Of a DNA stretch of 64,000 bases, positions 689-53,747 are shown piece by piece (position 1 is the first letter of the stretch; each line of letters opens with the position of its first letter). The position numbers and the translations under genes were made by a program. The notes below the pieces were generated by a model. It searched no databases. It worked only from the letters and a program-made list of their open reading frames with translations, and had not been told where the DNA came from. The stretch lies in IMG/VR virus record IMGVR_UViG_3300030102_006934, positions 62,001 through 126,000 of that record; one strand, written 5' to 3'.

Positions 689-691
689 CTT

Positions 692-1457: not shown

Positions 1458-1458
1458 T

Positions 1459-1617
1459 ATGAAACAAGTAATTCCAACACACGACCCACAAACTGGTGAG
1501 CTAAACCCTTACTACGAAGAACTAACTGGTGAAAAAAATCCATTAGAAATCCAAGACAAAACAGTTAAATTAACTAAGTTAGAAAAAATTATAGGTAAAA
1601 TAAAGAAAAGCTTATGA
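1459..1617 (+). CDS. small hypothetical protein (MKQVIPTHDPQTGELNPYYEELTG..., 52 aa)
   Basis: Read manually; fills the gap exactly, ATGA overlap with next gene. Confidence 0.6.
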   Translation: MKQVIPTHDPQTGELNPYYEELTGEKNPLEIQDKTVKLTKLEKIIGKIKKSL

Positions 1618-1988: not shown

Positions 1989-2032
1989 ATTAAAGGTAAG
2001 GTTTAAATATCTGTTTTTTTTAGTATTAAATT

Positions 2033-2040
2033 ATATTTAT
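2033..2040 (+). promoter_or_regulatory. putative phage late promoter ATATTTAT (type example; also at 3881, 6375, 9834, 11877, 21041, 21595, 31191, 31518, 33855, 39005, 46326, 54617, 61583, 63363 on + and 37202 on -)
   Basis: Same 8-mer a short distance upstream of start codons, mostly of structural or cargo-type genes. Confidence 0.65.
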
Positions 2041-2050
2041 TATAAAAGAA

Positions 2051-2308
2051 ATGATGAAAGATTTAATAAGACGTAAATTAAATGAAGATATGAAGAAGTC
2101 TGACGTTAAATCAGAGATAAAAAAATATATTGACTCTTCAGAGTTTAAAACTAAAATTGAGAAAATAGTCAAGGATAGAATTAAGAACGAAAAAGAGTTG
2201 GAGGATAAAGTCGTTGATATAACTAAGAACGTATTAACTCAACTATATAAGCAGTTGTGGGTTAAAAGAGCTTTCTGGAGAAACGGACTATCCAATAAAA
2301 GAACTTAA
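2051..2308 (+). CDS. hypothetical protein with KDLIRRKLNE leader
   Basis: ORF after ATATTTAT. Confidence 0.65.
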   Translation: MMKDLIRRKLNEDMKKSDVKSEIKKYIDSSEFKTKIEKIVKDRIKNEKELEDKVVDITKNVLTQLYKQLWVKRAFWRNGLSNKRT

Positions 2309-2309
2309 A

Positions 2310-3863: not shown

Positions 3864-3905
3864 TTTTAAGTAAAAACTTGATATTTATAATAAAAGACGA
3901 GAATT

Positions 3906-4844
3906 ATGAATAAGGATTTAATTAAAGAATACCTAAACACTACTTTCCTAGCTGAGGAAACTATTCCTAATGGTCTTAAAGATACAAAAGCCATTCAAAA
4001 GGATGATGCAGATATTAATAAAGAGGCTATGAAGGACGTTGAAGAAAAAATGGAAGAATATTTAGAAGGTATTACTGGTGAAAAAGAAAACGAAGAAGTC
4101 GTTAAAAAATACAACTTAAATGATGAGCAAAAAGACGCTCACGAGAAAGGTGAACTACCCAACGGAAGTATGGCAGTTCTTGATGTTAAAGGTGATACTG
4201 AAGAATGGAATGATAGACAAGAGAAAGCTATTAAGGGTGACTCAACAATGGGAAATGGAAAAACTGGTGACGAGGTTGCCAATGTAATACCTAGCGACCA
4301 AGCTGGATTCAAAGGACCAGAAGGTGACGAAGAAACTTATGATAATTCTATGAACTTTAAAGATGAATTCGAAAAAGCTAAACGAAAAGTTGATGCTAGA
4401 TTAGCAACATCTGTTGATAGTGATACTAAAGATACATACTTAGATGTTGACGAAGAAGATAAAAAATCTAAAAAAGTTAATGAGGGTATGAAAAGACTAG
4501 TATTCAAAAAAGAATTTAATGGTATTGAGAATGCACTCAAATTAATACCAGAATCATACAAAATTGATAACAAGACCTTCCAAATGACTGACGGAAATGA
4601 AAATTATGAAATCAGATGGGAAGGCAACATTAACGAAGGCAAAGCAATCGTTATTAAAGCCTCTGATAAAAATCTAATGAATGAGGATATGAATAAAATG
4701 AAACATCTTATGAACTTTAAATCTCAAGACACTTTAGGTACGCTTAAAGGTAATGATAGAATTAATGAAGACGAATCATTTAATAACATTTGGAATAAGA
4801 CAAAAGATTTGTTAAAAGAATCTGAAGAAAAAACACAAGAATAA
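3906..4844 (+). CDS. acidic putative virion protein; C-terminal domain duplicated in next gene
   Basis: ORF after late motif; MKRLVFKK...NALKLIPESYK domain. Confidence 0.55.
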   Translation: MNKDLIKEYLNTTFLAEETIPNGLKDTKAIQKDDADINKEAMKDVEEKMEEYLEGITGEKENEEVVKKYNLNDEQKDAHEKGELPNGSMAVLDVKGDTEEWNDRQEKAIKGDSTMGNGKTGDEVANVIPSDQAGFKGPEGDEETYDNSMNFKDEFEKAKRKVDARLATSVDSDTKDTYLDVDEEDKKSKKVNEGMKRLVFKKEFNGIENALKLIPESYKIDNKTFQMTDGNENYEIRWEGNINEGKAIVIKASDKNLMNEDMNKMKHLMNFKSQDTLGTLKGNDRINEDESFNNIWNKTKDLLKESEEKTQE

Positions 4845-4845
4845 A

Positions 4846-6312
4846 ATGAAAAGGTTAACATTTAAAAAACCATTCAACGGAATGGATAACGCTTTAAAAT
4901 TAATTCCAGAATCTTATAAGGTTGATGGACAAGAGTTTCAAATTACAGATGGAACCGAAACATATAATATAAGATGGGATATTAATGAGGCTACTGTACT
5001 AATAGCTGATAATAAAAATCTTATAAGTGAAGATGTAAAGAAAATGAAACATCTTATGAACTTTAAATCTCAAGATACTCTAGGAACACTTAAAGGTGAC
5101 GAAAGAATCAACGAGAACTCTTCATTTAACGATGTTTGGAGTAAGACAAAAGATTTATTAAATGAGTCTGAAGAAATAAATGAAATGACATCTGGTTCTG
5201 CGGGTGGATTAGGTTTCACTGGTGAAGGTAACTTAGAAGGTAATACACCAATTAAAGAGATGGAATCTGAAGAAAAAGAAGAAGAAAAAGAAGAAGAAAA
5301 AGAAACAGTTAAAATTTCTGACTCACAAATGGAAAAACTAAAAGATGAAGGCATATGTGATTGTGATGATAAATGCTTAATCAACACATCAGCAGATGTT
5401 GACTTTAAAGAAGTTTTAGAAAAAGCCGAAAAAATGGATAAAGAATGTATTATTGTCTCAAAAGAGAGAATGGACATGCTAGAAGAAAAAGGTGAATGTG
5501 GTTGTGGAAAAATTAAATTAAAATGTCACAAAGAAAGTGAAACCATTAACGAAATAACAAGAACAGAGTTTGAAAATAATGCTTCTCCTACCGATTTGAA
5601 AAGATATAAAAGGAATCCATATGAATTTGGACCTTTTGATGATGAAAAAAAGGATGAAAAAGCTATTGAAGAATTGACCCTACCAGATGCTGTTGATTTT
5701 GCAACTGGATTTCCAGTTGCCATGCTACCATTTATAGCTACCGCATTAGGTGTATCAGTTGCTGTGGCAAAACATCATTTAAAGAATGCTAAGTCAGGTA
5801 AAGAAGCTATGAAAGCCATATATGATATGAAAAATGATAAGGATGGTGATAATGACAATAATCCAAAAAATGAAGGTATTTACGAAGAAGCTCCTGGTGA
5901 AGAAGCTACAACACAAGTTAGTGTAGCTGATATAAGAAAAGACCTTAAAACTTTATTGTATAGCCTAAACAAAGCAGACTTTAAAGCAAAAGAGAGAAAA
6001 GTAGTCGACAGATTATTAGATATGATTAAACAACTTGGAGGAGAGGAAGATTCTTTCTCACCTAGATTATCATCTAAATTAGATTTAGTACAAAAAGCTA
6101 TTGATGATAAATCACAACCTAAAGATGCGACACCTGATTTAGCACAAGACGCTATGTCTGCTAATCAGAATGAAGAAAAAGATAGATTTGATGAAATCTT
6201 TGAAGATATGTATCAAGAAGAATTAAGTAAAAAACAATCTGAAGTTATGGATACCAACAATGATGGTAAAATTGACGCTGAGGATTTAGCTAACTTAAGA
6301 AATAAAAAATAA
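4846..6312 (+). CDS. acidic putative prohead core/scaffold protein with C-terminal EF-hand-like loop
   Basis: N-terminus paralogous to the end of the upstream gene; ends DTNNDGKIDAEDL. Confidence 0.5.
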   Translation: MKRLTFKKPFNGMDNALKLIPESYKVDGQEFQITDGTETYNIRWDINEATVLIADNKNLISEDVKKMKHLMNFKSQDTLGTLKGDERINENSSFNDVWSKTKDLLNESEEINEMTSGSAGGLGFTGEGNLEGNTPIKEMESEEKEEEKEEEKETVKISDSQMEKLKDEGICDCDDKCLINTSADVDFKEVLEKAEKMDKECIIVSKERMDMLEEKGECGCGKIKLKCHKESETINEITRTEFENNASPTDLKRYKRNPYEFGPFDDEKKDEKAIEELTLPDAVDFATGFPVAMLPFIATALGVSVAVAKHHLKNAKSGKEAMKAIYDMKNDKDGDNDNNPKNEGIYEEAPGEEATTQVSVADIRKDLKTLLYSLNKADFKAKERKVVDRLLDMIKQLGGEEDSFSPRLSSKLDLVQKAIDDKSQPKDATPDLAQDAMSANQNEEKDRFDEIFEDMYQEELSKKQSEVMDTNNDGKIDAEDLANLRNKK

Positions 6313-6336
6313 AATAGTTTAAAAGTTTATATAATA

Positions 6337-6364
6337 AAACCTCCGCATTAGTGGGGGTTTTTTT
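6337..6364 (+). terminator. intrinsic terminator
   Basis: AAACCTCCGC...GTGGGGGTTT hairpin + T run after a stop codon. Confidence 0.6.
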
Positions 6365-6399
6365 GTTTGGTATTATATTTATTAATAAAGAATACAGTT

Positions 6400-6933
6400 A
6401 TGGGTAAAGATATTAAAATATTAAATGAGGTTCATAAAATGAAGAACCTAATGAAATACATGGGAGGTGAGAAGTTATCCCCAAAGCAATTAAAAGAAAG
6501 TTATTACGAAGAATCGGAAATGCCACTAGAGGAAGGTGTTAGCGACAACTACTCAAGAGAAGTTAAACTAAGTGTTAGCACATACCAAGCAACTATTAAT
6601 GGTAATGAAATTGACTGGGTTGAAGCAAGTTCAGTAAAATTATCATACCTTATAGACATAGAAGCTAGAGAGTGGGGGATTAAAGGTATTAGTTTATACG
6701 CTATAGAAGGACCATCTGAGATTGAATTAGAGGTTTCTTATTACCCAGAAGGTAGTGATGACCCAGAACAAATGACAATAACAGTACCACTAAATTGGGA
6801 TAATGCCAATAAAGAAGAGGAAAGTGGTAATGAAGTTATAACAGTTGGTGAAGAAGTTGAACTACAACTATCTAATAATGATAAAGGTGAACTATTTGTT
6901 AGTGAAATAACAATTCCAGTTTATACCCTATAA
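6400..6933 (+). CDS. hypothetical putative virion protein (ILNEVHKMKNLM leader)
   Basis: ATG 6400 follows ATATTTAT at 6375. Confidence 0.55.
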   Translation: MGKDIKILNEVHKMKNLMKYMGGEKLSPKQLKESYYEESEMPLEEGVSDNYSREVKLSVSTYQATINGNEIDWVEASSVKLSYLIDIEAREWGIKGISLYAIEGPSEIELEVSYYPEGSDDPEQMTITVPLNWDNANKEEESGNEVITVGEEVELQLSNNDKGELFVSEITIPVYTL

Positions 6934-12645: not shown

Positions 12646-12876
12646 ATGAATTACGAGGAGCTAATAGAAACTATTTCAGAAGTTATAAACAATAAAAAAA
12701 TATATAAAGAAGGTTTAACACTACTTTATGAACTAGATGAAGAAAATCACGCCAAAATGGATGAGCACCTATTCTATAAATCAAAACCAGAGGGTAATTT
12801 TGAACATAGAGATATAATTGAACTTGAAATAGATGGTGTTATTATTAAATTTATTAAAAAAAGTTTGGAATATTAA
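12646..12876 (+). CDS. hypothetical protein
   Basis: ORF. Confidence 0.55.
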   Translation: MNYEELIETISEVINNKKIYKEGLTLLYELDEENHAKMDEHLFYKSKPEGNFEHRDIIELEIDGVIIKFIKKSLEY

Positions 12877-12918
12877 AATCTTTTTTTTACATTTGTATCG
12901 AACGTTAAAAATAATCAC

Positions 12919-13493: not shown

Positions 13494-14948
13494 ATGAGTA
13501 AATTAATTGATACTTTATTAACTAAAGATTCTCTAACAGAGAACGGTATGTCCACAAATTCTACAGCACTAAATTCATGCGTAGATTTATTTTTCAAAAT
13601 TGGTGCATTAAGAGGCGCTGAAAAAAACATAAAAATTAGTTCATTCACTAAAGCTTTTGGTGAAGACCCATTAACGGCCATGAAGATTCTTTTTTGGGCA
13701 AGAGACGTAAGGGGTGGTGCTGGAGAGCGAAAAACTTTTAGAGAGATATTAAGGTATTTAGTTAAAAACAAAACTGAAGTTGTTAAAAACAACATGGCTT
13801 TAATTCCTGAATACGGTAGATGGGACGACATGTTATATCTAATTGGAACTAAATTAGAGAAAGAAGCCCTAGGTGAAATCGCGTGTGCCTTAGAAGGTAA
13901 AAATGGTCTTTGCGCCAAGTGGATGCCTAGAGGCAACACTAAAAACAGGGAAAAGAAAAGATGGGCTTCGGTCATCAGAAAATATTTAGGATTAACTCCT
14001 AAATCTTACAGAAAATTATTATCTGAATTATCTAATACTGTTGAACAGTTAATGTGTTCTAAAAAATTCAAAGACATTAACTATTCTCACGTACCATCAA
14101 AGGCTATGTCTGATTATATGAGAGCTTTTGAAAGGAACGATAGTGAGGGTTTTAATAAATACTTAGATTCACTTAAAAATGGGGATACTAAAATTAACTC
14201 TGGGGCTATATACCCATATGATGTAACTAAGAACTTACAACATGGTTCTTCAGTAGGTGCAGTTGAGCAATGGAAATCATTACCAAACTATATGGAGGGT
14301 TCTAAAGAAAGAGTTTTACCAGTTGTTGATGTTTCTGGTTCTATGACTGTTCCAGCTGGTAATAACCCAAACCTATCTTGCTTAGATGTTTCGGTTTCTC
14401 TAGGTTTATATATTTCAGAAAGAAATGAAGGACCTTTTAAAGACGCCTTTTTTACTTTCTCAAATTCGCCACAGCTACAATATTTGAAGGGGGACCTTTC
14501 AGATAGGTTCACACAATTAAGTATGGCTGAATGGGGTGGGTCAACGAATATTGAAGCTACATTTAAAACTCTTTTAGATGTATCGGTAAATAACAATGTT
14601 AGTGCTGAAGAAATGCCTACAATGATATTAATACTCTCAGATATGGAATTCAATCAAGCCACCAGTATGGGTTGGAGCCAAGCTGAATCAGGCTGGAACC
14701 CAACGGTACAAGAAATGATTGAAAAAATGTATGATAATGCTGGTTACAAAATGCCAAAGATTGTATATTGGAACATTCAATCAAGACGGGACAATGTGCC
14801 AGTTAAATTTGATAAACAAGGTACCGCATTAGTTAGTGGGTTTAGCCCCGCATTACTAACCGCTTTATTATCTGGAAATGAAATCACACCATACAGTATT
14901 ATGAGTGATGTTATTAATTCAGAAAGATATGATAAAATAAAAATATAA
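13494..14948 (+). CDS. TROVE-like/vWA domain protein (DUF2828 family, Ro60-related)
   Basis: TENG, ARDVRGGAGER, YGRWDD, AKWMPR motifs; MIDAS DVSGS; ILSDMEF; YWN. Confidence 0.8.
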   Translation: MSKLIDTLLTKDSLTENGMSTNSTALNSCVDLFFKIGALRGAEKNIKISSFTKAFGEDPLTAMKILFWARDVRGGAGERKTFREILRYLVKNKTEVVKNNMALIPEYGRWDDMLYLIGTKLEKEALGEIACALEGKNGLCAKWMPRGNTKNREKKRWASVIRKYLGLTPKSYRKLLSELSNTVEQLMCSKKFKDINYSHVPSKAMSDYMRAFERNDSEGFNKYLDSLKNGDTKINSGAIYPYDVTKNLQHGSSVGAVEQWKSLPNYMEGSKERVLPVVDVSGSMTVPAGNNPNLSCLDVSVSLGLYISERNEGPFKDAFFTFSNSPQLQYLKGDLSDRFTQLSMAEWGGSTNIEATFKTLLDVSVNNNVSAEEMPTMILILSDMEFNQATSMGWSQAESGWNPTVQEMIEKMYDNAGYKMPKIVYWNIQSRRDNVPVKFDKQGTALVSGFSPALLTALLSGNEITPYSIMSDVINSERYDKIKI

Positions 14949-14950
14949 TT

Positions 14951-15088
14951 TAAAGAATGCATTCAGCAAACTCTTACTTAAACACAAATAGAGAAGAGAG
15001 GTTTAGTTGTTTCCTAGGTTTTTAAAACCACGATAAAAAAAATGACACCTTCACTACTGGGCTAGAAGTAAAAGCCCAAGCATTCTGA
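14951..15088 (+). ncRNA. putative structured RNA, TAAAGA-N4-TTCAGC family, copy 1
   Basis: AGAATGC (14954) pairs with GCATTCT (15080); internal hairpins; followed by terminator. Confidence 0.55.
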
Positions 15089-15094
15089 TTTATT

Positions 15095-15131
15095 AAGGGG
15101 ATTTGTAATTTTTTTTACAAATCCCTTTTTT
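15095..15131 (+). terminator. intrinsic terminator
   Basis: GGGATTTGTAA...TTACAAATCCC + T run. Confidence 0.75.
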
Positions 15132-15193
15132 AATATTTACACTTTCAGAAAAAATAAGTATCTTTAAAATATAAAAAAAAATAAACATTTGAT

Positions 15194-15427
15194 ATGAAAA
15201 TTTTAATAAAATATATTAAAGAAGACCACTCGGAGTCAATAGTTTATCTGGTTGACCACAACGACAACCCAATCAAGGCAGATATCGTAAATAAAGATGA
15301 ACAAAAGATATTAGTAAACGAATTACTATCCGAATATTTTACACCAGAAGATTGGGTAAATAATAAAAAAGATTTAACATCAAACGTGAGTGAGATAACT
15401 TATGATGAATATTTAAATCAAGAATGA
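15194..15427 (+). CDS. hypothetical protein
   Basis: ORF. Confidence 0.55.
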   Translation: MKILIKYIKEDHSESIVYLVDHNDNPIKADIVNKDEQKILVNELLSEYFTPEDWVNNKKDLTSNVSEITYDEYLNQE

Positions 15428-15813
15428 ACTTTATAACACAACACCCGATTAAAAAATCAGACTTAGGTTTTCATGGTAACCTATTTGGCGGTAAGTTACT
15501 AGCCTGGTTAGATGCAGCCGCAGCATCATTTGCTTGTGAGTTTTGTGACACACCAAGAATGGTTACTAAATCTATAGATAAATGCGTATTTAATAGACCA
15601 GCCAGAGAAGGCCAACTATTAAAAATATATGGTAAAGTTGAAAAGATAGGTACAACTAGTGTAGATTTAAAACTTGAAGCTAGAAGTCATAATGTTTACA
15701 ATGGTAAACAAAACATTATATTAGGGACAAATATAACTTTTGTTAGGGTTGATGAACAGGGAGATGCAATACCTATATCAGAAAGAGTTAAGAATAAAAT
15801 TAAAAAAAAGTAA
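15424..15813 (+). CDS. acyl-CoA thioesterase (hotdog fold, YciA-like)
   Basis: DLGFHGNLFGGKLLAWLD...VGTTS-like segment...ITFVRVD. Confidence 0.85.
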   Translation: MNFITQHPIKKSDLGFHGNLFGGKLLAWLDAAAASFACEFCDTPRMVTKSIDKCVFNRPAREGQLLKIYGKVEKIGTTSVDLKLEARSHNVYNGKQNIILGTNITFVRVDEQGDAIPISERVKNKIKKK

Positions 15814-15816
15814 ATT

Positions 15817-16137
15817 ATGGAAAAAGGATACCCACTATTAATTGTTTTTTATTTGGATAGAGAAATGATGACTAATCCAGATATTGTACAACCGTTTGCC
15901 AATTCGGTTAATGACGCATTAGCTCAAAGGGAAGCAAATGCAATGGCTTTCTTTCTACCAACTGATGGTGAGGAAAGAATTGAATGTATAAACCCAATAC
16001 AGGTTACTAAAACAAATATGAAGAAAATAAATAAATTAGTTGAAGACCTCACAAATAACTTTGACATCGGAAAGGGTGCGGACAAAGGCAAGAGCGACCC
16101 ATCTAATGATATTGAAATTAAAAATGATGGAAAGTAA
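15817..16137 (+). CDS. hypothetical protein
   Basis: ORF. Confidence 0.55.
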   Translation: MEKGYPLLIVFYLDREMMTNPDIVQPFANSVNDALAQREANAMAFFLPTDGEERIECINPIQVTKTNMKKINKLVEDLTNNFDIGKGADKGKSDPSNDIEIKNDGK

Positions 16138-16294
16138 TAGTAGAGAGTGCGAATTACTATCGTTACTGTATAGGTCTGAAGAACTGTTATTGGAAATAAT
16201 GGACGGATGTAAAGACAATCAGGATTATATGTACCTATCTATAATAATAAAAAATTTGGAAGACAAAATAAGTCAGCAACAAGATTTGATATGA
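16124..16294 (+). CDS. small hypothetical protein
   Basis: Downstream ATG of ORF 16040..16294. Confidence 0.4.
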   Translation: MMESNSRECELLSLLYRSEELLLEIMDGCKDNQDYMYLSIIIKNLEDKISQQQDLI

Positions 16295-16400
16295 TAAATA
16301 AAAATAAATTAACAACACAGTTTTCAAAGAAAGATACGGTTAAAAGGCTTATCAAACAACGTAGATTAAGTTTTAATAAATTAAAATTAAGGGGTTAATA

Positions 16401-17069
16401 TTAAGGTCTAGTGGATGTTCTTCTAATTTTAAGTATGTCCCAGCCAGTATTCTCTTTTATTATATCATACATTTTACCAGTCATAACTTTACTAGCTGTA
16501 CCCATAAAAACCAAGCCATTTATTTTAGCTTTGGTTACTGATTTATTCAATTCATGATGTAATCTTTGAGCATCTTTTTTACACTTACAAATAACCATAT
16601 CAAACTGTTTTTCATTATAAATAATTAATTTATTATGAACTACAATTATCTGTTTTGAATGATTAATTTCGGTTATATTTTTAAATAAACTATTTATTAT
16701 TTCATGTATTGTTACTCTATCGTTTTTGGGGTCCCTACCATATAACCAAAACGTTTCTTCTAATTCATAATGCTGGTCATCTATTACAGTCCATATACCA
16801 AAAAGAGGTTTTTCGCTATAAGTCCTACCCATAGAATCCCTTCTAGTTCTAAATTTATCCCCATCTTCAGTATCTTTAACTATGTATAGTCTATACTTAA
16901 CTGGCTTTATACCATCATAATTTATAAATTTCTTGGGGAACATAACAGATTTATTATCATCAATAATTTTGTGATAATTAATGAAAGAAGCTTCAATAGT
17001 TTTACATCTGTGTAGGGTCATTTTATAATCCCCGTTTTTTGTAAGTATTACCCTGTACATATTCAACAA
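16401..17069 (-). CDS. hypothetical protein
   Basis: 222 aa ORF with TAnnTTTG upstream. Confidence 0.65.
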   Translation of the reverse strand: MLNMYRVILTKNGDYKMTLHRCKTIEASFINYHKIIDDNKSVMFPKKFINYDGIKPVKYRLYIVKDTEDGDKFRTRRDSMGRTYSEKPLFGIWTVIDDQHYELEETFWLYGRDPKNDRVTIHEIINSLFKNITEINHSKQIIVVHNKLIIYNEKQFDMVICKCKKDAQRLHHELNKSVTKAKINGLVFMGTASKVMTGKMYDIIKENTGWDILKIRRTSTRP

Positions 17070-17099
17070 ATTTACTTATATTAATACAAAAATAAATAG

Positions 17100-18155
17100 A
17101 TGCCCAAAAAAGATTACTATAAAATACTAGGTGTTAACAGAGATTCTGATGCCAAAACAATTAAAAAGGCATATAGAAAGTTATCTAAAAAATACCATCC
17201 AGATGTAAATCCAGATAACAAAGAAGCTGAGGAAAAATTTAAAGACGTTGCTTCAGCATATGAGGTCCTTTCTGATAAAACTAAAAAGAGTAATTATGAT
17301 ACCTTTGGTGATGAGAATGGGCGACCCAATAACTCATTTAATGATACAAACATGTCTGATATATTTAGTCAGTTTGGTTTTGGTGGGAGAGCAAATCCAT
17401 TTACAAGACAAAGACAAACTAGGGGTAATGATTTGGCTTTAAATATAAAAATAAGTCTTGAGGATGTTCATAACGGACTGACTAAAAAATTCAAATATAG
17501 GAGGAACGCAAAGTGTGAACCATGTGACGGTGAAGGTGGAACAGAAAAATCAACTTGTCCAAATTGTAATGGTACTGGGTATCAAACATTCCAACAAAAA
17601 ACCCCAATGGGTATTATGAGACAAATGGTTGATTGTAGTACGTGCGAATCAACTGGTGAGGTAAATAAAAAAATGTGTAACTCATGTTCTGGAAATGGAG
17701 TTAAAAATAAAGAAGAATATATAGAGGTTAAAATACCAAAAGGTGTTACAGATAATGATATTATATCATATAATGGTATGGGTCATTCTATAAAGGGTGG
17801 TTCTTCGGGTAGACTAATAGTTAAATTATTAATCACAAAAAATGAGCACTTTACTAGAAATGGTGATGATTTAAAATATAATTTAAAATTAAAATACCCA
17901 CAATTGGTTTTAGGTGATAAGGTAGAAATACCAACAATAGACGGAACTAAAATAAGAGTTAAAATACCAAAGTTAAGTAATATTGGTGATAACTTAAGAA
18001 TCGTTGGTAAAGGATTAAATAGCAAAAAGGGTGATAATGTAGTTGGTGACATGTTAATAAATTTAGATATTGAAATGCCTAAAAAACTAGAAGAAGGTGA
18101 AGAAGAACTAATAGATAAATTAAAAATAATTAATGAAAGAGTTGCTAAAGAATAA
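17100..18155 (+). CDS. dnaJ: molecular chaperone DnaJ
   Basis: J domain with HPD, G/F region, four CxxCxGxG-type repeats, C-terminal domain. Confidence 0.95.
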
Positions 18156-18189
18156 AATGAATGATATATTTGATGGAAATATTAACTAT

Positions 18190-18402
18190 ATGAGTGAAAA
18201 TTCAGGTAAAGGTGGGGGATTAGGTTTAAGCACTATGGTGTTTATAGTATTCCTAATACTTAAATTATGTAAAGTAGGTATGGTTGCCAACTGGTCATGG
18301 TTGTGGGTAACATCCCCATTATGGATACCAATAATTGTTATGTTTGGTATAATAGTTATGGTACTGATACTTAGCTTTATAGTTAAAATTTTTGATTATT
18401 AA
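18190..18402 (+). CDS. small membrane protein (LKL...WSWxWVTSPLWI family)
   Basis: Paralog of 30933..31145. Confidence 0.65.
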   Translation: MSENSGKGGGLGLSTMVFIVFLILKLCKVGMVANWSWLWVTSPLWIPIIVMFGIIVMVLILSFIVKIFDY

Positions 18403-18433
18403 ATAATATTATATTAACAATTAAATTAAATTT

Positions 18434-18853
18434 ATGGCAAAGTACGAAGAACCATTTAAAGACACACAAGAAATTTTTGATGAAGTGATTAGAAATTCAG
18501 GCTTGGACAGGTATATCAACATTAAATTATTGGTAGATAATAAGCAAAAGAAAAAAGTTGCAAAACCATATAAGTCACCAAACTTATTAAAACATGAAAC
18601 AAAAAATGATGTTTACATTATAATAAATGAATTGATTTTTGAACAACTAGAAACCTGGCAAAAATTAATGGTCGCTGAGGAAGCTATAGCTGGAATTAGT
18701 TTTGATACGGAAAAGGATAAACTAGAAATAAAAACTGGTGACATCTCAACTTTTTCAGGGCTATTAAAGAAGTATGGCTATGAAAGGTACGAAGTAGTTG
18801 AAGAGTCTGTCAAGACACTATATAATGTCGAAAGAGAAACAGCAGAGGTGTAA
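18434..18853 (+). CDS. hypothetical protein (possibly degenerate phage metallopeptidase-like)
   Basis: ORF; no intact HExxH. Confidence 0.45.
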   Translation: MAKYEEPFKDTQEIFDEVIRNSGLDRYINIKLLVDNKQKKKVAKPYKSPNLLKHETKNDVYIIINELIFEQLETWQKLMVAEEAIAGISFDTEKDKLEIKTGDISTFSGLLKKYGYERYEVVEESVKTLYNVERETAEV

Positions 18854-19107
18854 TGACTAGAGAAGAAATTGCAGAATATAATGAAGAGGCGCTAATATGT
18901 GATGGCTTTGATGAAGCCATCATTGGTGTCGCTGAGAGAATAAATTTAGGTCCAGTAGCCGCATATAGCGTTGAAAAAATAATAGAAATACTAATGGAAA
19001 GAGACGGTATGACATATGAAGATGCTCACGAGCACTTTTCTTATAATATTATTGGGTCATGGATGGGCGAATACACACCCGTCTTTATTTACACAAATGA
19101 AGAATAA
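18853..19107 (+). CDS. conserved phage hypothetical protein
   Basis: DGFDEAIIG...YS..KII..LM..DGMT.E.A.E.F.YNI.G.WMGE.TP motif common in phages. Confidence 0.7.
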   Translation: MTREEIAEYNEEALICDGFDEAIIGVAERINLGPVAAYSVEKIIEILMERDGMTYEDAHEHFSYNIIGSWMGEYTPVFIYTNEE

Positions 19108-19109
19108 AT

Positions 19110-19331
19110 ATGAAAGAACAATTGTACAAATTATTAAGTAGTAAGGCATTATCAGAAAAAGAAGAAGCCTTAACCACATTGAAATTATTATCAGAATATC
19201 CAGCTGGTATTGGTGACCACTCTACTGGTGACTTTTATAATAATGCTGAAGAGGCTCTACAAAAATTAGTTGATGCTGATGATAAGTTAGAAACACTAGA
19301 TAAATATAAAGATATTTTATTTAAAATTTAA
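19110..19331 (+). CDS. conserved phage hypothetical protein
   Basis: PAGIGDHS motif. Confidence 0.6.
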   Translation: MKEQLYKLLSSKALSEKEEALTTLKLLSEYPAGIGDHSTGDFYNNAEEALQKLVDADDKLETLDKYKDILFKI

Positions 19332-19335
19332 GATT

Positions 19336-20034
19336 ATGTTAGACTTTTATAGTGAATTTAAAAAATATGCTAAATTACATATGGGTGTTGATGAAATGAA
19401 ATTTCGTGACTGGGAGAACCTACAATCAAATATGTATAATAATGTTCAAGTGGGTGGGTCATTAACACCTTACATATTGGAAGAAAGGGAAATGAGAGTA
19501 ACTCAGATGGACATCTTTTCAAGACTAATGATGGATAGAATATTATGGGTGGCTGGCCCAGTAAACGACCAAATGAGCACTGTACTTCAAGCTCAATTAA
19601 TGTTTTTAGATAACGTTGAGGAAAGAGACATTACGATGCATGTCGACTCACCAGGGGGGTCAGTTAAATCTGGATTAAGCATGGTAGATGTTATGAATTA
19701 TGTTAAATCAGATATTGTAACCATAAATACTGGTATGGCGGCCTCCATGGGCTCAATATTGCTTGGTAACGGAACTAAAGGTAAAAGATTTTCACTGCCA
19801 AACTCAAAAGTTATGCTACACCAAGTTTCCGCTGGGGCACAAGGCCATGTTGAAGACATGAAAATTAGTATTGCGGAGGCTGACAAATATAATGATAAAC
19901 TATTTGGCATGTTAGCTAGTTTTTGTGGTAAAACAAAGAAAAGAGTATTAGCTGATTGCAATAGAGATAATTGGCTTGATGCGAAAGAAGCTTTAGACTA
20001 TGGCATCATTGATGGTATAGTTGAAAATAAATAA
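19336..20034 (+). CDS. clpP: ATP-dependent Clp protease proteolytic subunit
   Basis: DIFSRLMMDRI, DSPGGSV, GMAASMG (catalytic Ser), MLHQ, RDNW. Confidence 0.95.
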   Translation: MLDFYSEFKKYAKLHMGVDEMKFRDWENLQSNMYNNVQVGGSLTPYILEEREMRVTQMDIFSRLMMDRILWVAGPVNDQMSTVLQAQLMFLDNVEERDITMHVDSPGGSVKSGLSMVDVMNYVKSDIVTINTGMAASMGSILLGNGTKGKRFSLPNSKVMLHQVSAGAQGHVEDMKISIAEADKYNDKLFGMLASFCGKTKKRVLADCNRDNWLDAKEALDYGIIDGIVENK

Positions 20035-20618: not shown

Positions 20619-20990
20619 GGGGCAAAATGGTTATTGATTATTTATAGTCGTGATTAGTAAGCATGCAGTGTTAGATTGGAAACACTTTAATTACCTATCA
20701 TTTTTCTTAGATGGAAACGAGTTTGACATCGATGAAAACTTCCTAGATACCGCTTCAGTAGAAGTTGGTACGGGAGAGGTTGCATTCGCCTAAGAGTAAT
20801 GATGATGGTGGTAATCCACCAACCCTCTTTGATAGTAGAGTTTAAAAAATTATCCAGAAGATTAGTTATCAGTAAAACGAACTGTAATAAGGGAACTGTT
20901 AAACTTTGCTGGGATTAGAAACCAGATAAGCATGTAGAAAACTCTTTATGAGTAAGTAAGACTAGAGTTCGAATCTCTATTGCTCCACTA
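20619..20990 (+). ncRNA. ssrA: tmRNA; probable tag (A)GNEFDIDENFLDTASVEVGTGEVAFA
   Basis: Acceptor stem GGGGCAA/TTGCTCC-A with G3.U wobble; T-arm TAGAG-TTCGAAT-CTCTA; internal frame 20713-20793 ending AFA-stop; TATATTTG promoter at 20573; CCA not encoded. Confidence 0.88.
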
Positions 20991-27556: not shown

Positions 27557-27775
27557 ATGATTAAAGAAGAAAAACATACAATAGATTTAGAATATTTTAA
27601 AAAATATGTTGAAACTTATGATTATAGTGAATTTGAATATAATGAAACATTTATAAAAGATATGATTTATGGTATTGGTTTAGCCGTTAACGGTGATAAG
27701 TTCAAAATGGCTGATGGGTATAAAAGATTTGAAGATTTCTTATTAAATGAAATTATAAAACAAAAACAAAGATGA
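27557..27775 (+). CDS. cassette ORF, hypothetical (ends KQKQR in junction repeat)
   Basis: ORF ends in repeat TGA. Confidence 0.65.
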   Translation: MIKEEKHTIDLEYFKKYVETYDYSEFEYNETFIKDMIYGIGLAVNGDKFKMADGYKRFEDFLLNEIIKQKQR

Positions 27776-27924
27776 AAATATTTTTAAGTTTAATGATAAT
27801 GCTTTGTATGGGAATGACCTTATACCATTTCATCTCTCAACCAGAAGAGACAAACGAACTTATATTATGGTCAATGTTAACCCTATTTAATAGTCAATCT
27901 TTAATTAATATAAACCAAAACTGA
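27772..27924 (+). CDS. cassette ORF, 50 aa hydrophobic peptide
   Basis: MKIFLSLMIMLCMG...ININQN; runs repeat to repeat. Confidence 0.55.
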   Translation: MKIFLSLMIMLCMGMTLYHFISQPEETNELILWSMLTLFNSQSLININQN

Positions 27925-27925
27925 G

Positions 27926-28108
27926 ATGAGTAAAGAAAGAATAAAACAACTAACAGAAGAATATCCAGGTTGGATATCTTCTCTACTAGAAAGAGGTCTT
28001 ATGGAGCATCAGACAAGTTATGGTGACATGATACCTGTACCCAATGAAGTAGTAGTTTTTATTAAAGAATTTTATGAATACGAACAAAACAAAGATGAAG
28101 AAAACTGA
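27926..28108 (+). CDS. cassette ORF, hypothetical
   Basis: Starts at repeat ATG. Confidence 0.6.
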   Translation: MSKERIKQLTEEYPGWISSLLERGLMEHQTSYGDMIPVPNEVVVFIKEFYEYEQNKDEEN

Positions 28109-28397
28109 TTATAAACCACTAATTCCAATATGTTCAGATGAAGAACTAAAAGACATCGCAGAACAATGGTGTGATTTAGTTGGTACAGAACCTACTAACA
28201 CTACGTTAAACGCATTTATGATGGGAGCAAAAATAGCTATATCTAATATCGGTTGGGTAGTAAACCAAAACGAAGATGATATGAGAATTGAATGTTTAAT
28301 CGGTGAAACATATCAAGTTACTGATGGTTCTACTGTATGGCTTCAAGGTAGTTTATCAGATTGTGAGTCATACTTAAACCAAAAAAAAGATGAGTAA
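28095..28397 (+). CDS. cassette ORF, apparent fusion of two cassettes across a mutated repeat at 28261
   Basis: Starts at repeat ATG (MKKTDY); internal VNQNEDDM; ends LNQKKDE. Confidence 0.6.
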   Translation: MKKTDYKPLIPICSDEELKDIAEQWCDLVGTEPTNTTLNAFMMGAKIAISNIGWVVNQNEDDMRIECLIGETYQVTDGSTVWLQGSLSDCESYLNQKKDE

Positions 28398-28647
28398 AGA
28401 GATTAACATACAGGTAGAAACCATTGAGGTTAAGGGTGAGGTGATACCATTACAACATGAATGGAAAGTTTGTGAAAATAATAAAGAATGGTACGGTAGA
28501 TTACCCAGAAAGAAGAAGAAACAATTAAAGAAACGAATGGGTGAAGAATCTTTTGTTAGTTGGTGGAATGGACTTGATGTATATTATCATCCTGATATTG
28601 AAGAAGAATTAACAAAGTTACTTATAAATAAACCAAAACAAAGATGA
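28390..28647 (+). CDS. cassette ORF, hypothetical (RLPRKKKK motif; ends KPKQR)
   Basis: Repeat to repeat. Confidence 0.65.
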   Translation: MSKEINIQVETIEVKGEVIPLQHEWKVCENNKEWYGRLPRKKKKQLKKRMGEESFVSWWNGLDVYYHPDIEEELTKLLINKPKQR

Positions 28648-28702
28648 GTTATGAAACAAGAAAATAGAATAATTAGAATGATAATGGATTCCGATACTGT
28701 TT

Positions 28703-28712
28703 NNNNNNNNNN
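28703..28712. other. assembly gap (10 N)
   Basis: N run inside the cassette array. Confidence 1.
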
Positions 28713-28816
28713 AACTACTTTATTACATCTTTTAATAGAGACAGTAAGAAAGGTAAACGATATTTGGAACTACGTAGTGAATATGTTTTATAAACACAAT
28801 ATAAACCAAAACAAAA

Positions 28817-29113
28817 ATGACTAAACAATATAATGTAAAGTATGAAGTAGGACAAGATGTCTATGTATTAAGAGATAAAAAGATAAGTAAAAATAGGGTA
28901 TACAAGATTAGAGTTACCGAACAACAACCTTATACTAAGGGTAATTCAGATGGAACTCTTACTGAAATGTCGGGTATTGAAATAGATTATCTTATAGAAA
29001 CAAAAAGAGATTTCATACATCCACATACAAAAAGCACCCAAAGTTCATACGATTGGTACAATGAAGAAGATGTCTTTACTAATAAGGATGAATTGATTGC
29101 ACAAATTGTATAA
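28817..29113 (+). CDS. cassette ORF, SH3-like beta protein
   Basis: KYEVGQDVY...EEDVFTNKDEL; repeat to repeat. Confidence 0.65.
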   Translation: MTKQYNVKYEVGQDVYVLRDKKISKNRVYKIRVTEQQPYTKGNSDGTLTEMSGIEIDYLIETKRDFIHPHTKSTQSSYDWYNEEDVFTNKDELIAQIV

Positions 29114-29125
29114 ACCAAAACAAAG

Positions 29126-29254
29126 ATGAGAAGAATTGATATTGGATTAATACTTAAATTGGTTTTTCTTATTACCATTATATGGTTCTTGTTTTACATT
29201 GGAAAAGACAAAAATGTGAATTACAAAGGCAAAGGTTATTATGAAACTAGATAA
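29126..29254 (+). CDS. cassette ORF, 42 aa single-TM peptide
   Basis: MRRIDIGLILKLVFLITIIWFLFY...; repeat to repeat. Confidence 0.55.
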   Translation: MRRIDIGLILKLVFLITIIWFLFYIGKDKNVNYKGKGYYETR

Positions 29255-29266
29255 ACCAAAACAAAG

Positions 29267-29509
29267 ATGAGTAACAAAACAATAGCAATTATATACTTCA
29301 ATCAATATGATGGTAAGTATAATACTAAGTCTTATATGTATTTTGAAACTAAACTACATGCTGAAAGATACTTGATGGTAAACGGTTATCAGCCCGATGA
29401 TATTTTTGAATGGAAAAAGGATTACCTTTATTCAGCTAAAATCCATATGGAAACATTACATCTAGGTGATGGTGAGCATATTATTGATACTAAACAAAAA
29501 CAAAGATGA
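29267..29509 (+). CDS. cassette ORF, hypothetical (ends KQKQR)
   Basis: Repeat to repeat. Confidence 0.65.
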   Translation: MSNKTIAIIYFNQYDGKYNTKSYMYFETKLHAERYLMVNGYQPDDIFEWKKDYLYSAKIHMETLHLGDGEHIIDTKQKQR

Positions 29510-30003
29510 GTAAAAAGAAATTCATAGAAAGAAGACCAAATTATTTTTCAGGGTTTGAAGATAGTGAGTATGAGGTAGACAACTTCAATCAAGTTTTAGA
29601 AATACCCTTCGTAAAAAAGTTTTCAGAAGCCCCAAAATTTCATTCTTATGCGGTCTCTGTCAATATTAATGATGACTTACCTAGAGATGATGAGAATTAC
29701 TATAAGATGGAATTAATGGCTATGTATGATTGGGACGATGAATATAATGGTTGTAAACAATGGTGGGTAATAGGCCATCTTCCAGGATTTATTATGTATG
29801 AAACCAAATTAAAAGGATGGGAAGATATTAAAGCATCACACAAACCCAACTGTTGGAGTAGAAAATACAGCGGATGTAAAGACCTATTAGGTGTGGATAG
29901 AGATAAAGAAACCAAAATGAAAGTATTAAAGGAACTTGGTTGGGAACGAGATGATATGGTAGGTATTGTCGGTCATTGTGATTGTGGATGGAAAAATAAT
30001 TAA
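29506..30003 (+). CDS. cassette ORF, hypothetical with Cys/His motifs
   Basis: H..NC and CDCG; repeat to repeat. Confidence 0.65.
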   Translation: MSKKKFIERRPNYFSGFEDSEYEVDNFNQVLEIPFVKKFSEAPKFHSYAVSVNINDDLPRDDENYYKMELMAMYDWDDEYNGCKQWWVIGHLPGFIMYETKLKGWEDIKASHKPNCWSRKYSGCKDLLGVDRDKETKMKVLKELGWERDDMVGIVGHCDCGWKNN

Positions 30004-30015
30004 ACCAAAACAAAG

Positions 30016-30168
30016 ATGAGAGAAGTAAATTACAAATGGGTTCCTAAAAAGGGATGGGTGGTTGAATCTGAAGATGAAACACTAAAAATGGTGGTGGAAG
30101 AAACACTAAAAGAAGTTGATAGAACAATAAATTTTCAAGAATACTTAAACCAAAACAAAAATGAGTAA
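30016..30168 (+). CDS. cassette ORF, 50 aa (ends LNQNKNE)
   Basis: Read manually; repeat to repeat. Confidence 0.55.
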   Translation: MREVNYKWVPKKGWVVESEDETLKMVVEETLKEVDRTINFQEYLNQNKNE

Positions 30169-30331
30169 AGAAGAAAAAAGATTTGAGTTATGGGTTAATA
30201 AATTCAGAAATGAATTAGCAGAAGGTCAAATAGAAGTTTTACAAGATAGTTTATCTAATTTTGAATGGCCTGATGAATATAAAGAAATACTTCAGGATAG
30301 GATAAAGGAACTTAAACCAAAACAAAGATGA
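30161..30331 (+). CDS. cassette ORF, 56 aa (ends KPKQR)
   Basis: Read manually; repeat to repeat. Confidence 0.55.
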   Translation: MSKEEKRFELWVNKFRNELAEGQIEVLQDSLSNFEWPDEYKEILQDRIKELKPKQR

Positions 30332-30687
30332 GTAAGAAAAAGAAAGAAAATAAAAAGATTAGGGATAAGAATACTACGACTCTAAAAGAAATGGAAGAAA
30401 ATGGTATTGTCCCAGAGAACTTTCATTTATACGATAGTGTTGACATGAAAGAATATAATAACCAATTTGACGGTTATAAGGAATGGGAAGAAAAACAAAA
30501 CCGAAAAACAAAGATAAGTAAAAAAGAATTAGATAAAGCATACGATAAGATAGTAGAAGACCTAAGAGGTAATCTAACATCAGAAGAATATAAAGAACTA
30601 ATCACCCTTGAGCTTGCCCTAAGTCAAGGGTATGATGTTAATGGCGATGAAGAAAGATATAAAGAATTAAGTAATAAACGAAATTAA
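30328..30687 (+). CDS. cassette ORF, hypothetical
   Basis: Repeat to partial repeat. Confidence 0.65.
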   Translation: MSKKKKENKKIRDKNTTTLKEMEENGIVPENFHLYDSVDMKEYNNQFDGYKEWEEKQNRKTKISKKELDKAYDKIVEDLRGNLTSEEYKELITLELALSQGYDVNGDEERYKELSNKRN

Positions 30688-30754
30688 ACCAAAATAAATT
30701 TGGCCAACCAAAATAAAAGCTGTATGTTTATATTAACTATTTAAAACAGTAAAG

Positions 30755-33011: not shown

Positions 33012-33120
33012 ATAACAAATATAAGAATAATACTTTAGATAAACAAATTATTGAGCATAAAAAAACCTCCCTAAGATTAATCCTAGAGAGGTCTTATTTA
33101 AAACAGTCGTAAGTTAATAC

Positions 33121-34249: not shown

Positions 34250-34385
34250 AAAAAAAGCAGGAGCAATGCTTCGGTCCTTCCATCCAATCTATAATACAAA
34301 GATACGAATAATTTTTGACATGGCCAAATAATTCTTAAACTTTTTACCTGTTGTCTCTGTAAAATAAATTTACTATAGTTATTGT

Positions 34386-34808: not shown

Positions 34809-34875
34809 GCATTTTATTTGGCCATCTATAATAAAATCCGTATATTTGTATTAACTATTTAAAACAGTATTATAC

Positions 34876-53686: not shown

Positions 53687-53747
53687 TGTTTTTTGTTTTT
53701 TTCTATATACAAATATAGTGAATTATCATTAAGCCACCAAATCTAAA

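Follow-up and report, generated by a model that had tools for sequence, protein, structure and literature searches.

Short repeats that punctuate arrays of phage or bacterial genes have been described in several forms. In T4-type phages, the promoter-early stem-loop (PeSL), a sigma-70-like early promoter plus a terminator stem-loop in an intergenic space, flanks nonessential ORFan genes in hyperplastic regions; insertions, deletions, and replacements between relatives have their breakpoints at the motif, recombination between copies is the proposed driver with no dedicated recombinase involved, and mini-circles have been shown (Arbiol et al. 2010, PMC2839356; Comeau et al. 2014, PMC4122927). 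In Cluster K mycobacteriophages, the 13-bp start-associated sequence (SAS), GGGATAGGAGCCC, contains the Shine-Dalgarno (SD) core AGGAG and lies 3 to 7 bp before the start codons of a scattered subset of nonstructural genes, in one orientation, sometimes containing the stop codon of the upstream gene; it is essentially absent from the host genome, and its function is presumed to be translational (Pope et al. 2011, PMC3203893). Stoperators of Cluster A mycobacteriophages are asymmetric repressor-binding DNA sites found in many copies at gene junctions, oriented with transcription (as cited in PMC3203893). In integrons, co-oriented, apparently promoterless cassettes are separated by attC sites, imperfect inverted repeats able to fold as hairpins, next to a gene for the tyrosine recombinase IntI. 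Finally, Bacteroidia initiate translation without an SD sequence, in weakly structured, A-rich, Kozak-like regions, and in Flavobacterium johnsoniae A at −3, −6, −12, and −13 has been measured as a positive determinant of initiation (Baez et al. 2019, PMC6847099).

Here we describe an array that shares some properties with each of these. It lies in a 64,000-nucleotide stretch (the window) of IMG/VR virus record IMGVR_UViG_3300030102_006934, positions 62,001 to 126,000, part of a very large phage contig of 380 kb whose host is inferred to be a member of the Bacteroidota.

A row of small genes joined by a repeated stop-start element

The initial annotation of the window reported about 14 copies of a repeat at the boundaries of small, unrelated, co-oriented ORFs, without promoters or terminators between them, and this observation was confirmed. 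We searched the window for TAAACCAAAACAAAGATGAG with up to 3 mismatches and found 12 copies, all on the + strand, between 27757 and 30332, whereas none were found in 100 shuffles. A search with a 17-nt core added a degenerate copy, and a decayed copy without an ATG marks the end of the array, giving 13 copies plus one decayed end copy of T-AAACCAAAACAAAG-ATG-AG(TAA), spaced 114 to 510 nt apart. The core AACCAAAAC occurs elsewhere in the window only at 16744 (+) and 36638 (−); neither is followed by the rest of the motif, and we regard both as chance matches. The features are as follows.

27557 to 30704 (+): whole array of 13 small co-oriented ORFs (42 to 165 aa) packed without intergenic space, inside a long + strand block of accessory genes
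27757 to 27776 (+): junction copy 1 (3 mismatches); ORF A ends ..KQKQR at the TGA that overlaps the ATG (frame 2), and ORF B starts at 27772
27911 to 27930 (+): junction copy 2 (2 mismatches); ORF B ends at a TGA inside the variant copy, and the next ORF starts at 27926
28080 to 28099 (+): junction copy 3, degenerate (3 mismatches in the 17-nt core); its ATG at 28095 starts cassette C, and the upstream ORF reads through to 28108
28261 to 28280 (+): junction copy 4 (2 mismatches); a 5-nt duplication (GATGATATGAG) removes the frame-3 stop and fuses cassettes C and D into one ORF, 28095 to 28397; homologues of C in other contigs end here
28375 to 28394 (+): junction copy 5 (1 mismatch); the upstream ORF ends ..NQKKDE at the frame-3 TAA, and ORF E starts at 28390
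28629 to 28648 (+): junction copy 6 (exact); ORF E ends ..KPKQR (frame 2), the motif ATG gives only 7 codons, and cassette F starts at the second ATG, 28651
28651 to 28793 (+): cassette F (70 aa in relatives), interrupted by the assembly gap, with its own TAA at 28791 to 28793, 8 nt before the next junction copy
28703 to 28712 (no strand): assembly gap inside cassette F; the flanks are colinear, but the frame is not kept by the 10 Ns
28802 to 28821 (+): junction copy 7 (2 mismatches); ORF G (98 aa) starts at 28817
29111 to 29130 (+): junction copy 8 (exact); ORF G ends at the motif's first TAA (frame 1), and ORF H (42 aa, hydrophobic) starts at 29126
29252 to 29271 (+): junction copy 9 (exact); H ends at the frame-1 TAA, and ORF I (80 aa) starts at 29267
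29491 to 29510 (+): junction copy 10 (1 mismatch); I ends ..KQKQR (frame 2), and ORF J (165 aa) starts at 29506; with copy 8 it bounds the H+I segment
30001 to 30020 (+): junction copy 11 (exact); J ends at the frame-1 TAA, and ORF K (50 aa) starts at 30016
30146 to 30165 (+): junction copy 12 (1 mismatch); K ends ..NQNKNE at the frame-3 TAA, and ORF L (56 aa) starts at 30161
30313 to 30332 (+): junction copy 13 (exact); L ends ..KPKQR (frame 2), and ORF M (119 aa) starts at 30328
30685 to 30704 (+): decayed terminal copy (TAAACCAAAATAAATTTGG, no ATG), which supplies the stop codon of M

The element is the gene junction itself: each copy lies at an ORF boundary, its ATG is the start of the next ORF, and it carries stop codons in all three frames (TAA at −15, TGA overlapping the ATG, and TAA, TAG, or TGA at +5), so that the upstream ORF ends in it whatever its frame. 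Among 154 junction contexts, upstream ORFs ended in the motif in frame 1, 2, or 3 in 32, 36, and 58 cases. The frame-3 stop was present in 124 of the 154, including 66 of the 96 that do not need it, whereas about 20% would be expected from the composition of nonarray starts. Conservation is sharp but limited to −15 to +3, and is weaker to +8. Comparison of cassettes showed that they are coding in the frame of the motif ATG (mismatches by codon position, 610/459/827).

We found no SD sequence before 94 nonarray genes of the window or before 498 long ORFs of motif-bearing loci (6.8% have an SD-like core), and A peaked at −14 to −11 and at −3, as in F. johnsoniae. The motif likewise has no SD sequence and has all four of the positive adenines. 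The stretch from −15 to 0 was predicted to be about 13 times more accessible than average positions (P = 1e−5), although not significantly more so than ordinary gene starts (P = 0.08). In contrast, C at −11, −10, and −5 was seen in at most 7% of the 94 nonarray genes, against 64 to 82% in the array, so that the motif does not precede most genes in this window. Consensus scans showed no excess of promoters (39 found, 45 expected) and only one terminator-like site inside or near the array, at 30968, which is past its end.

To examine the gap, we used two continuous relatives among the motif-bearing IMG/VR stretches (numbered here with an L): L020, a second array from the same contig, and L074. 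In both, the two flanks of the gap are joined by 80 nt, not 10, and form one 70-aa ORF that starts at a second ATG 7 nt after the motif ATG, the right flank being read in frame 0. The 57-aa ORF read across the Ns is therefore an artifact of the arbitrary gap length. We also considered L020 as a strain variant of the same locus, but its flanks are unrelated to those of the window.

Searches of the cassettes and the array against Pfam, PHROGs, and Rfam gave nothing above threshold. Cassette J has 24 homologue clusters, all hypothetical; its AlphaFold2 model (pLDDT 77.7) gave no match with E below 0.1 in a Foldseek search of the PDB. A DNA search of the array against INPHARED phages found no match, and a 34-nt motif query found only chance-level hits. 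The exact motif string does not occur in the literature library searched, where keyword searches for motifs of Flavobacterium or Cellulophaga phages found nothing relevant; the paper on the crAss-like phage phi14:2 reports no common early motif.

Distribution of the junction and order of the cassettes in other contigs

The exact 20-mer occurs in at least 120 IMG/VR stretches, giving 415 copies on the majority strand and 0 on the other, with a median spacing of 220 nt. It is at chance level in 596 Gb of cellular genomes. The 9 hits there are low-GC contigs in MAGs and SAGs of unrelated phyla, several with arrays, so they are most likely misbinned phage DNA and gave no host assignment. The motif is shared by at least two unrelated groups of phage contigs, and 8 of 79 cassette clusters span two unrelated contig groups. 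One group of arrays lies beside a Sak4-like annealing protein.

The initial annotation had proposed comparing relatives for cassette presence, absence, and order, with breakpoints at the repeat, and we carried out this comparison. Cassettes with 89 to 98% nucleotide identity to those of the window occur in other orders in L057, L054, L033, L020, L117, and L076, whereas core genes of the same contigs are only 64 to 78% identical to those of the window. More than half of the homology ends fall inside the motif. Precise indels are joined through a single motif copy, as for the H+I segment, which is present in the window and absent in L020; 6 of 16 colinear indels are of this kind. At 80 to 95% amino acid identity, the downstream neighbor was conserved in 1 of 30 pairs (3%) across motif junctions, against 23 of 38 (61%) across plain junctions of genes of at most 170 aa in the same loci (P = 4e−7). 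The junction itself stayed 15/15 in cassette pairs that are only 73 to 83% identical. All of the comparison sequences are metagenome assemblies retrieved through the exact motif, which biases conservation estimates.

Arrays sit at contig ends 25 times in 58, against about 6 expected, in keeping with heterogeneous or repeated DNA. An attempt to anchor synteny on the flanks of the array gave nothing, because its 274-aa and 153-aa neighbors have no close relatives in IMG/VR apart from the contig itself, and the relatives at 47 to 63% identity have neither synteny nor arrays.

We found no integrase or recombinase among about 55 window ORFs scanned, and no protein family recurred within about 4 kb of arrays in more than 6 of 60 loci. 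There are no inverted repeats or stem-loops at the junctions, the repeat being a nonpalindromic, A/C-rich block of 19 to 24 nt.

A proposed translation junction that may also serve as microhomology

The interpretation in the initial annotation, an integron-like or recombination-driven cassette system in a jumbo phage, was only partly supported. The repeat is indeed where gain, loss, and reordering of small accessory genes take place, and the contig is very large, but the integron-like reading was not supported, and the suggested anti-defense or host takeover function of the cassettes remains pure conjecture in the absence of any family, structure, or defense-related hit. The annotation did not recognize that the repeat is first of all a stop/start junction, with an inferred role in translation, or that it is not peculiar to this phage.

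With moderate confidence, we favor the view that the segment is a hyperplastic array of small ORFan genes, each joined to the next by a portable 19- to 24-nt block, T AAACCAAAACAAAG ATG AGT AA, with two roles. In the first, which is inferred from the sequence and published rules, the block would be a translation junction for ribosomes that ignore SD sequences: it ends the upstream ORF in any frame and presents an unstructured A-rich leader with an AUG within 15 nt of the stop, such that a terminating or freshly bound ribosome could initiate on the next gene of a polycistronic mRNA. In the second, the same block, flanking every cassette in many phages, would serve as microhomology for homologous recombination between copies in one genome, between arrays, or between coinfecting phages, using phage or host functions. 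Crossovers inside the block would delete, duplicate, reorder, and transfer whole genes and always regenerate a working junction, the three-frame stops and the conserved ATGAGTAA making any pair of neighbors compatible. In effect, this would be an integrase-free cassette exchange system, analogous to PeSL-mediated modular shuffling in T4-type phages. The copies, their strand and phase, the frames of the stops, and the pattern of shuffling are shown by the sequences, whereas translation enhancement, coupling, crossover within the motif, and the host are all inferred. The conserved C at −11, −10, and −5 and G at −1 are not part of the published Bacteroidia rules, are not explained by them, and could mark a specific binding site. 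In addition, 20 to 24 nt is short for efficient homologous recombination, and breakpoints at gene boundaries can also arise from illegitimate recombination followed by selection, although the plain-junction control argues against this.

Of the alternatives, the one that survives best, although we consider it unlikely, is that the block is only a regulatory or translational signal of one gene class, comparable to SAS, such as an operator for a phage-encoded RNA-binding repressor or activator or a cleavage site for an endoribonuclease acting on the polycistronic mRNA, and that the shuffling reflects relaxed selection on dispensable genes, not recombination at the motif. Consistent with this idea, the conserved C and G positions are kept in 75 to 89% of nonseed copies, beyond what the general initiation rules need, the motif appears to be phage specific and marks only a subset of genes, and the same gene family exists without it in other phages. 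However, neighbor linkage is about 20 times lower across motif junctions than across plain junctions of equally small genes, the indels described above are joined through exactly one copy, and no shared candidate regulator was found in the roughly 4 kb visible on each side of arrays. The two roles are not exclusive.

Two further readings are improbable, to about the same degree. A dedicated recombinase encoded elsewhere in the genome, of which only 64 of 380 kb were examined, might recognize the repeat and move cassettes as circles; the co-oriented, apparently promoterless cassettes bounded by one repeated site, with presence, absence, and order varying at that site, would fit. Against this, the site is a short asymmetric direct repeat without a foldable structure, no recombinase was found in the window, no family recurs beside arrays beyond the 6 of 60 loci noted above, the site occurs in at least two unrelated phage groups, and it doubles as coding sequence and start codon with fixed phase. 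Alternatively, the block might be a promoter for a phage RNA polymerase or a modified host polymerase that starts transcription at or next to the ATG, giving one leaderless mRNA per small gene; its size (about 19 to 23 nt), strict orientation, and high conservation resemble single-subunit RNA polymerase promoters, and fixed spacing to the ATG is what leaderless transcripts require. However, it does not resemble the Bacteroidetes −33/−7 consensus, matches to which lie in other intergenic regions, the only one inside the array being on the opposite strand at 28613 to 28642. There are also no terminators between the genes, upstream ORFs read through the block in three frames, the same block in small and very large unrelated phages would require the same polymerase specificity in all of them, and most F. 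johnsoniae transcripts are leadered (PMC6847099).

That the variable orders are chimeric joins made by assemblers at a short repeat cannot be fully excluded, given that arrays lie at contig ends and at a gap in metagenome assemblies, but is very unlikely, because the repeat is shorter than the usual final k-mer sizes of assemblers, identical arrays recur in independent samples (L009/L024 and L031/L039), cassette sequences differ by 2 to 25% between contexts and so are not the same reads rejoined, and the motif copies are plain sequence in the window.

A broader possibility, which we advance only tentatively, is that the block is a universal adaptor, such that any ORF placed between two copies is terminated, reinitiated, and made recombination competent. 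Unrelated phages of SD-blind Bacteroidota would then share one pool of tiny accessory genes through an integrase-free exchange network, and the conserved C and G positions may additionally be read by a dedicated phage factor, a translational regulator or a recombination protein. If the favored view is correct, it would show how phages of hosts that ignore SD sequences express dense arrays of tiny genes and that a translational signal, rather than a promoter/terminator or an att site, can be the shared module that drives cassette exchange. The exact string also pulls out hyperplastic accessory-gene arrays, the likeliest home of host takeover and counterdefense genes, from hundreds of uncultured phage genomes, it explains why such regions break assemblies, and it offers a compact candidate expression junction for polycistronic constructs in Flavobacteriia and other Bacteroidota, where genetic tools are scarce.

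Comparison with described systems

Like stoperators, the block is an asymmetric short site present in many copies at gene junctions and oriented with transcription, but stoperators have no fixed phase to the start codon, whereas here the phase to the ATG is invariant and no repressor is known. Like the initiation regions of Bacteroidia, it lacks an SD sequence, has A at −3, −6, −12, and −13, and has low structure and an AUG start; host genes, however, show only a statistical preference, whereas here a fixed 19-nt string with conserved C and G positions is reused verbatim and is virtually absent from cellular genomes. The array resembles integrons in having co-oriented, apparently promoterless cassettes whose presence and order vary with breakpoints at a repeated site, but no IntI, attI, or attC hairpin was found in the window, the site is part of the coding and initiation sequence, and exchange is most simply explained by homologous recombination.

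The block agrees with SAS in being an asymmetric repeat at the start codons of a subset of genes, in one orientation, and rare in cellular genomes, in containing the stop codon of the upstream gene, and in having a presumed translational function. It differs in sequence, in lacking an SD core, in abutting and including the ATG, and in carrying three-frame stops, and SAS genes are confined to one phage cluster and are not reported as shuffling cassettes. The closest parallel is with the PeSLs of T4-type phages, in that a short conserved motif flanks nonessential ORFan genes in hyperplastic regions, indels and replacements between relatives break at the motif, and recombination between copies, without a dedicated recombinase, is the proposed driver. 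What differs here is that there is no promoter, no stem-loop, and no intergenic space, that the shared module is a translational rather than a transcriptional signal, a stop/start block that overlaps both coding regions, and that the same block is shared by unrelated phage groups.

A stop-start block at the gene junctions of the array

The initial annotation had described a short element repeated at the boundaries of small, co-oriented ORFs, and this description proved correct. We found 12 occurrences of the 20-mer TAAACCAAAACAAAGATGAG in the window when up to 3 mismatches were allowed, all of them on the + strand, and none were found in 100 shuffles. A search with a 17-nt core added a degenerate copy, and a decayed copy without an ATG closes the array. 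The 9-nt core occurs elsewhere only twice, and in neither case is it followed by the rest of the motif. Every copy lies at an ORF boundary, and the ATG inside the block (positions 16 to 18) is the start of the next ORF, which is 42 to 165 aa long. The features of the array referred to below are as follows.

27757 to 30332 (+), the 12 copies found with up to 3 mismatches
28095, the ATG of the degenerate copy
28261 to 28285, a junction copy with a 5-nt duplication (GATGATATGAG)
28703 to 28712, an assembly gap written as 10 Ns
30685 to 30704, the decayed copy without an ATG

The assembly gap lies inside a single cassette. In L020, a second array at another place in the same contig, and in L074, a continuous relative, the two flanks of the gap are joined by 80 nt and form one 70-aa ORF that begins at a second ATG, 7 nt after the motif ATG, and ends at the position equivalent to 28791 to 28793. 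The flanks are therefore colinear, but the 10 Ns misstate both the length and the frame, and the 57-aa ORF obtained by reading across them is not real. The left flank is 100% identical to the second copy of this cassette in the same contig, which is a plausible reason for the assembly break.

To define the limits of the block, we compared 364 distinct contexts. Conservation was sharp, with nothing conserved upstream of -16. The conserved string runs from a T at -15 through AAA, CC, AAAA, C, AAA and G to ATG A, with a weaker GTAAA extending to +8. The block holds a stop codon in each frame, namely, a TAA at -15 in frame with the next gene, a TGA overlapping the ATG, and a TAA, TAG or TGA at +5. 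In the window, upstream ORFs end in all three ways, at a plain TAA, as ..KPKQR or ..KQKQR, or as ..NQNK(N/D)E, and across 154 contexts from other contigs the corresponding counts were 32, 36 and 58. The frame-3 stop was present in 124 of these 154 contexts, including 66 of the 96 in which the upstream ORF does not use it, whereas about 20% would be expected from the base frequencies at non-array starts. The stop is therefore part of the element. The copy at 28261 provides a natural illustration of what this stop prevents, because there the 5-nt duplication has removed it and fused two cassettes in frame into one ORF (28095 to 28397).

Translation context and distribution of the block

We next asked how the block compares with other gene starts. 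The 94 non-array genes of the window have no Shine-Dalgarno (SD) signal (the frequency of G is at most 0.17 at any upstream position) and show mild A enrichment at -14 to -9 and at -3. Of the 498 long ORFs in the motif-bearing loci, only 6.8% have an SD-like core, and A peaks at -14 to -11 (0.68 at -12) and at -3 (0.61). This is the signature measured by ribosome profiling and reporters in Flavobacterium johnsoniae, in which A at -3, -6, -12 and -13 stimulates initiation and SD is not used (PMC6847099). The block has A at all four positions. Its -15 to 0 stretch is predicted to be unpaired about 13 times more often than average positions (P = 1e-5), which is similar to other gene starts (P = 0.08). 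However, the C at -11, -10 and -5 and the G at -1 are not accounted for by the general signature; they reach at most 7% in other genes but 64 to 89% in the block.

Three observations point to a host in the Bacteroidota, although this remains an inference: the tail-spike protein is 49% identical to that of a Flavobacterium phage, SD sequences are absent throughout, and matches to the Bacteroidetes promoter consensus TTTG-N(17-23)-TAnnTTTG lie in other intergenic regions of the window. The total number of these matches (9, against 5.5 expected) is not significant, but those listed here lie in intergenic or divergent regions just upstream of ORFs. We also noted a phage-encoded tmRNA gene and, upstream of the array, a block of host-like protein and RNA quality control genes (13494 to 20034, +).

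12864 to 12895 (+), promoter consensus match
34817 to 34848 (+), promoter consensus match
33016 to 33047 (-), promoter consensus match
34297 to 34328 (-), promoter consensus match
53710 to 53741 (-), promoter consensus match
13494 to 14948, Ro60/TROVE-like protein (DUF2828 plus DUF7788; phrog "RNA-binding protein")
17100 to 18155, full-length DnaJ
19336 to 20034, ClpP-like or head-maturation protease family member
20619 to 20988 (+), tmRNA gene, found by ARAGORN with a tag peptide ending ..GEVAFA and by Rfam RF00023 at 59.7 bits (gathering score, 47)

The exact 20-mer occurs in at least 120 IMG/VR stretches, which hold 415 copies when up to 3 mismatches are allowed. All of the copies within a locus are on one strand, and the median spacing is 220 nt. 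The densest array seen, at the start of a 242-kb contig (L054, positions 1 to 6529), has 25 junction copies in 6.5 kb. The ORF downstream of a copy has a median length of 63 aa, and mismatches between homologous cassettes fall 610/459/827 on codon positions 1/2/3, so that these are real genes in the frame of the motif ATG. In 596 Gb of cellular genomes, by contrast, we found only 9 stretches (L122 to L130), and our estimate from base composition puts a handful of matches at chance level. All nine are low-GC contigs, several of them with arrays, binned into MAGs or SAGs of unrelated phyla (Campylobacteraceae, Aenigmatarchaeota, Promethearchaeia, Prochlorococcus and others), and they are probably misbinned phage DNA; one, QCKH01000009.1 (63,985 bp), has the same length as an IMG/VR contig.

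The window corresponds to positions 62001 to 126000 of a 380,343-bp contig, which has a second array of 14 junction copies at its very 3' end (L020, 367749 to 380343) with unrelated flanks. This second array carries copies of window cassettes A, F, G and J that are 95 to 100% identical, among other cassettes, and the contig ends inside the J copy, so that it is either a true second array or a chimeric contig end. The motif-bearing loci fall into at least two groups that share no long protein. One group has thymidylate synthase and large contigs, whereas the other, consisting of smaller contigs, has a primase, a DnaB-like helicase and a Sak4-like single-strand annealing protein next to the array (L071, 2119 to 2793, - strand, and 7 other loci).

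Rearrangement of cassettes at the block

The initial annotation had named three observations that would count against exchange at the repeat, namely, identical gene order and content in relatives, indel breakpoints away from the repeat, and uniform occurrence of the motif before most genes genome-wide; we looked for each and found none of them, the last being examined within the window, where the motif does not precede most genes. Order and content were not conserved. Against the window order A B C D E F G H I J K L M, a 156-kb contig (L057) has I H. K E. G at 96 to 98% nucleotide identity, the L054 array has I, C and B far apart, and the L020 array has F.. G J. Breakpoints fell at the repeat: of 328 internal left ends of high-identity alignments, 174 lie within 10 nt of the core start, and of 328 right ends, 163 lie just past the core. 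Indels could also be precise. The window has H and I (360 nt together) between G and J, where L020 joins its counterparts of G and J through one copy, and 6 of 16 colinear indels in the whole set have both breakpoints and the joint at copies.

To control for ordinary mosaicism at gene boundaries, we compared homologous pairs of genes of at most 170 aa at 80 to 95% amino acid identity. The downstream neighbor was also homologous in 23 of 38 pairs across plain junctions but in only 1 of 30 across motif junctions (P = 4e-7). At 95% identity or more, the figures were 95% and 73%, respectively. Furthermore, cassettes were far more similar than core genes. In motif-bearing contig L077, cassette G is 96% identical while the Ro-like and endonuclease genes are 64 to 66% identical, and in L076, J is 89% and thymidylate synthase is 75% identical. 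Eight of 79 cassette clusters span the two unrelated contig groups.

We then looked for the components of known cassette systems. No inverted repeats or foldable sites occur at the junctions, no integrase or recombinase was found among about 55 window ORFs, and no protein family recurs within 4 kb of arrays in more than 6 of 60 loci. There is no excess of promoters or terminators, and no Rfam family was detected. The element is therefore not an integron and not a PeSL in composition. The interpretation in the initial annotation, of an integron-like or recombination-driven cassette system, was thus only partly supported, in that gain, loss and reordering do take place at the repeat but the integron-like reading is not supported.

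The gene family of cassette J exists at 58 to 65% identity in other phages without the block, behind ordinary A-rich leaders. The block is a property of arrays and not of the genes. In one such phage (L138, 581 to 4468), a 58%-identical homologue of J with no junction motif sits directly behind a phage DNA polymerase III alpha gene and is followed by a dNMP kinase, an M32 peptidase and a NUDIX gene. As for the cassettes themselves, B and H are short and hydrophobic, and the predicted fold of J, of moderate confidence, matched nothing in the PDB. The suggestion in the initial annotation that the cassettes act in anti-defense or host takeover remains conjecture.

Proposed mechanism and relation to known systems

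We propose that the block is a translational stop-start adaptor for SD-blind ribosomes and that, because it is identical on both sides of every cassette, it is also the homology used for exchange. In this view, a crossover anywhere inside the block would regenerate a complete junction, and the three-frame stops and conserved first codons would guarantee that any upstream gene still terminates and any downstream gene still starts. The anatomy of the block, its specificity to phage contigs, the shuffling pattern, the comparison with plain junctions and the signature of lateral transfer were shown by the sequence comparisons, whereas the stimulation of translation, translational coupling, crossover within the block and the enzymes involved are inferred. 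The junction stays 15/15 in cassette pairs that are only 73 to 83% identical, which needs either selection or homogenization, although retrieval of the sequences through the exact motif biases this estimate.

We found no description of this string or arrangement in the literature searched. In function, the block is closest to PeSL-mediated modular shuffling (PMC2839356, PMC4122927), and in position, it is closest to the start-associated sequences of Cluster K mycobacteriophages (PMC3203893). It differs from both in composition, having no promoter, no terminator and no SD, in its three-frame stop design, and in its spread across unrelated phages.
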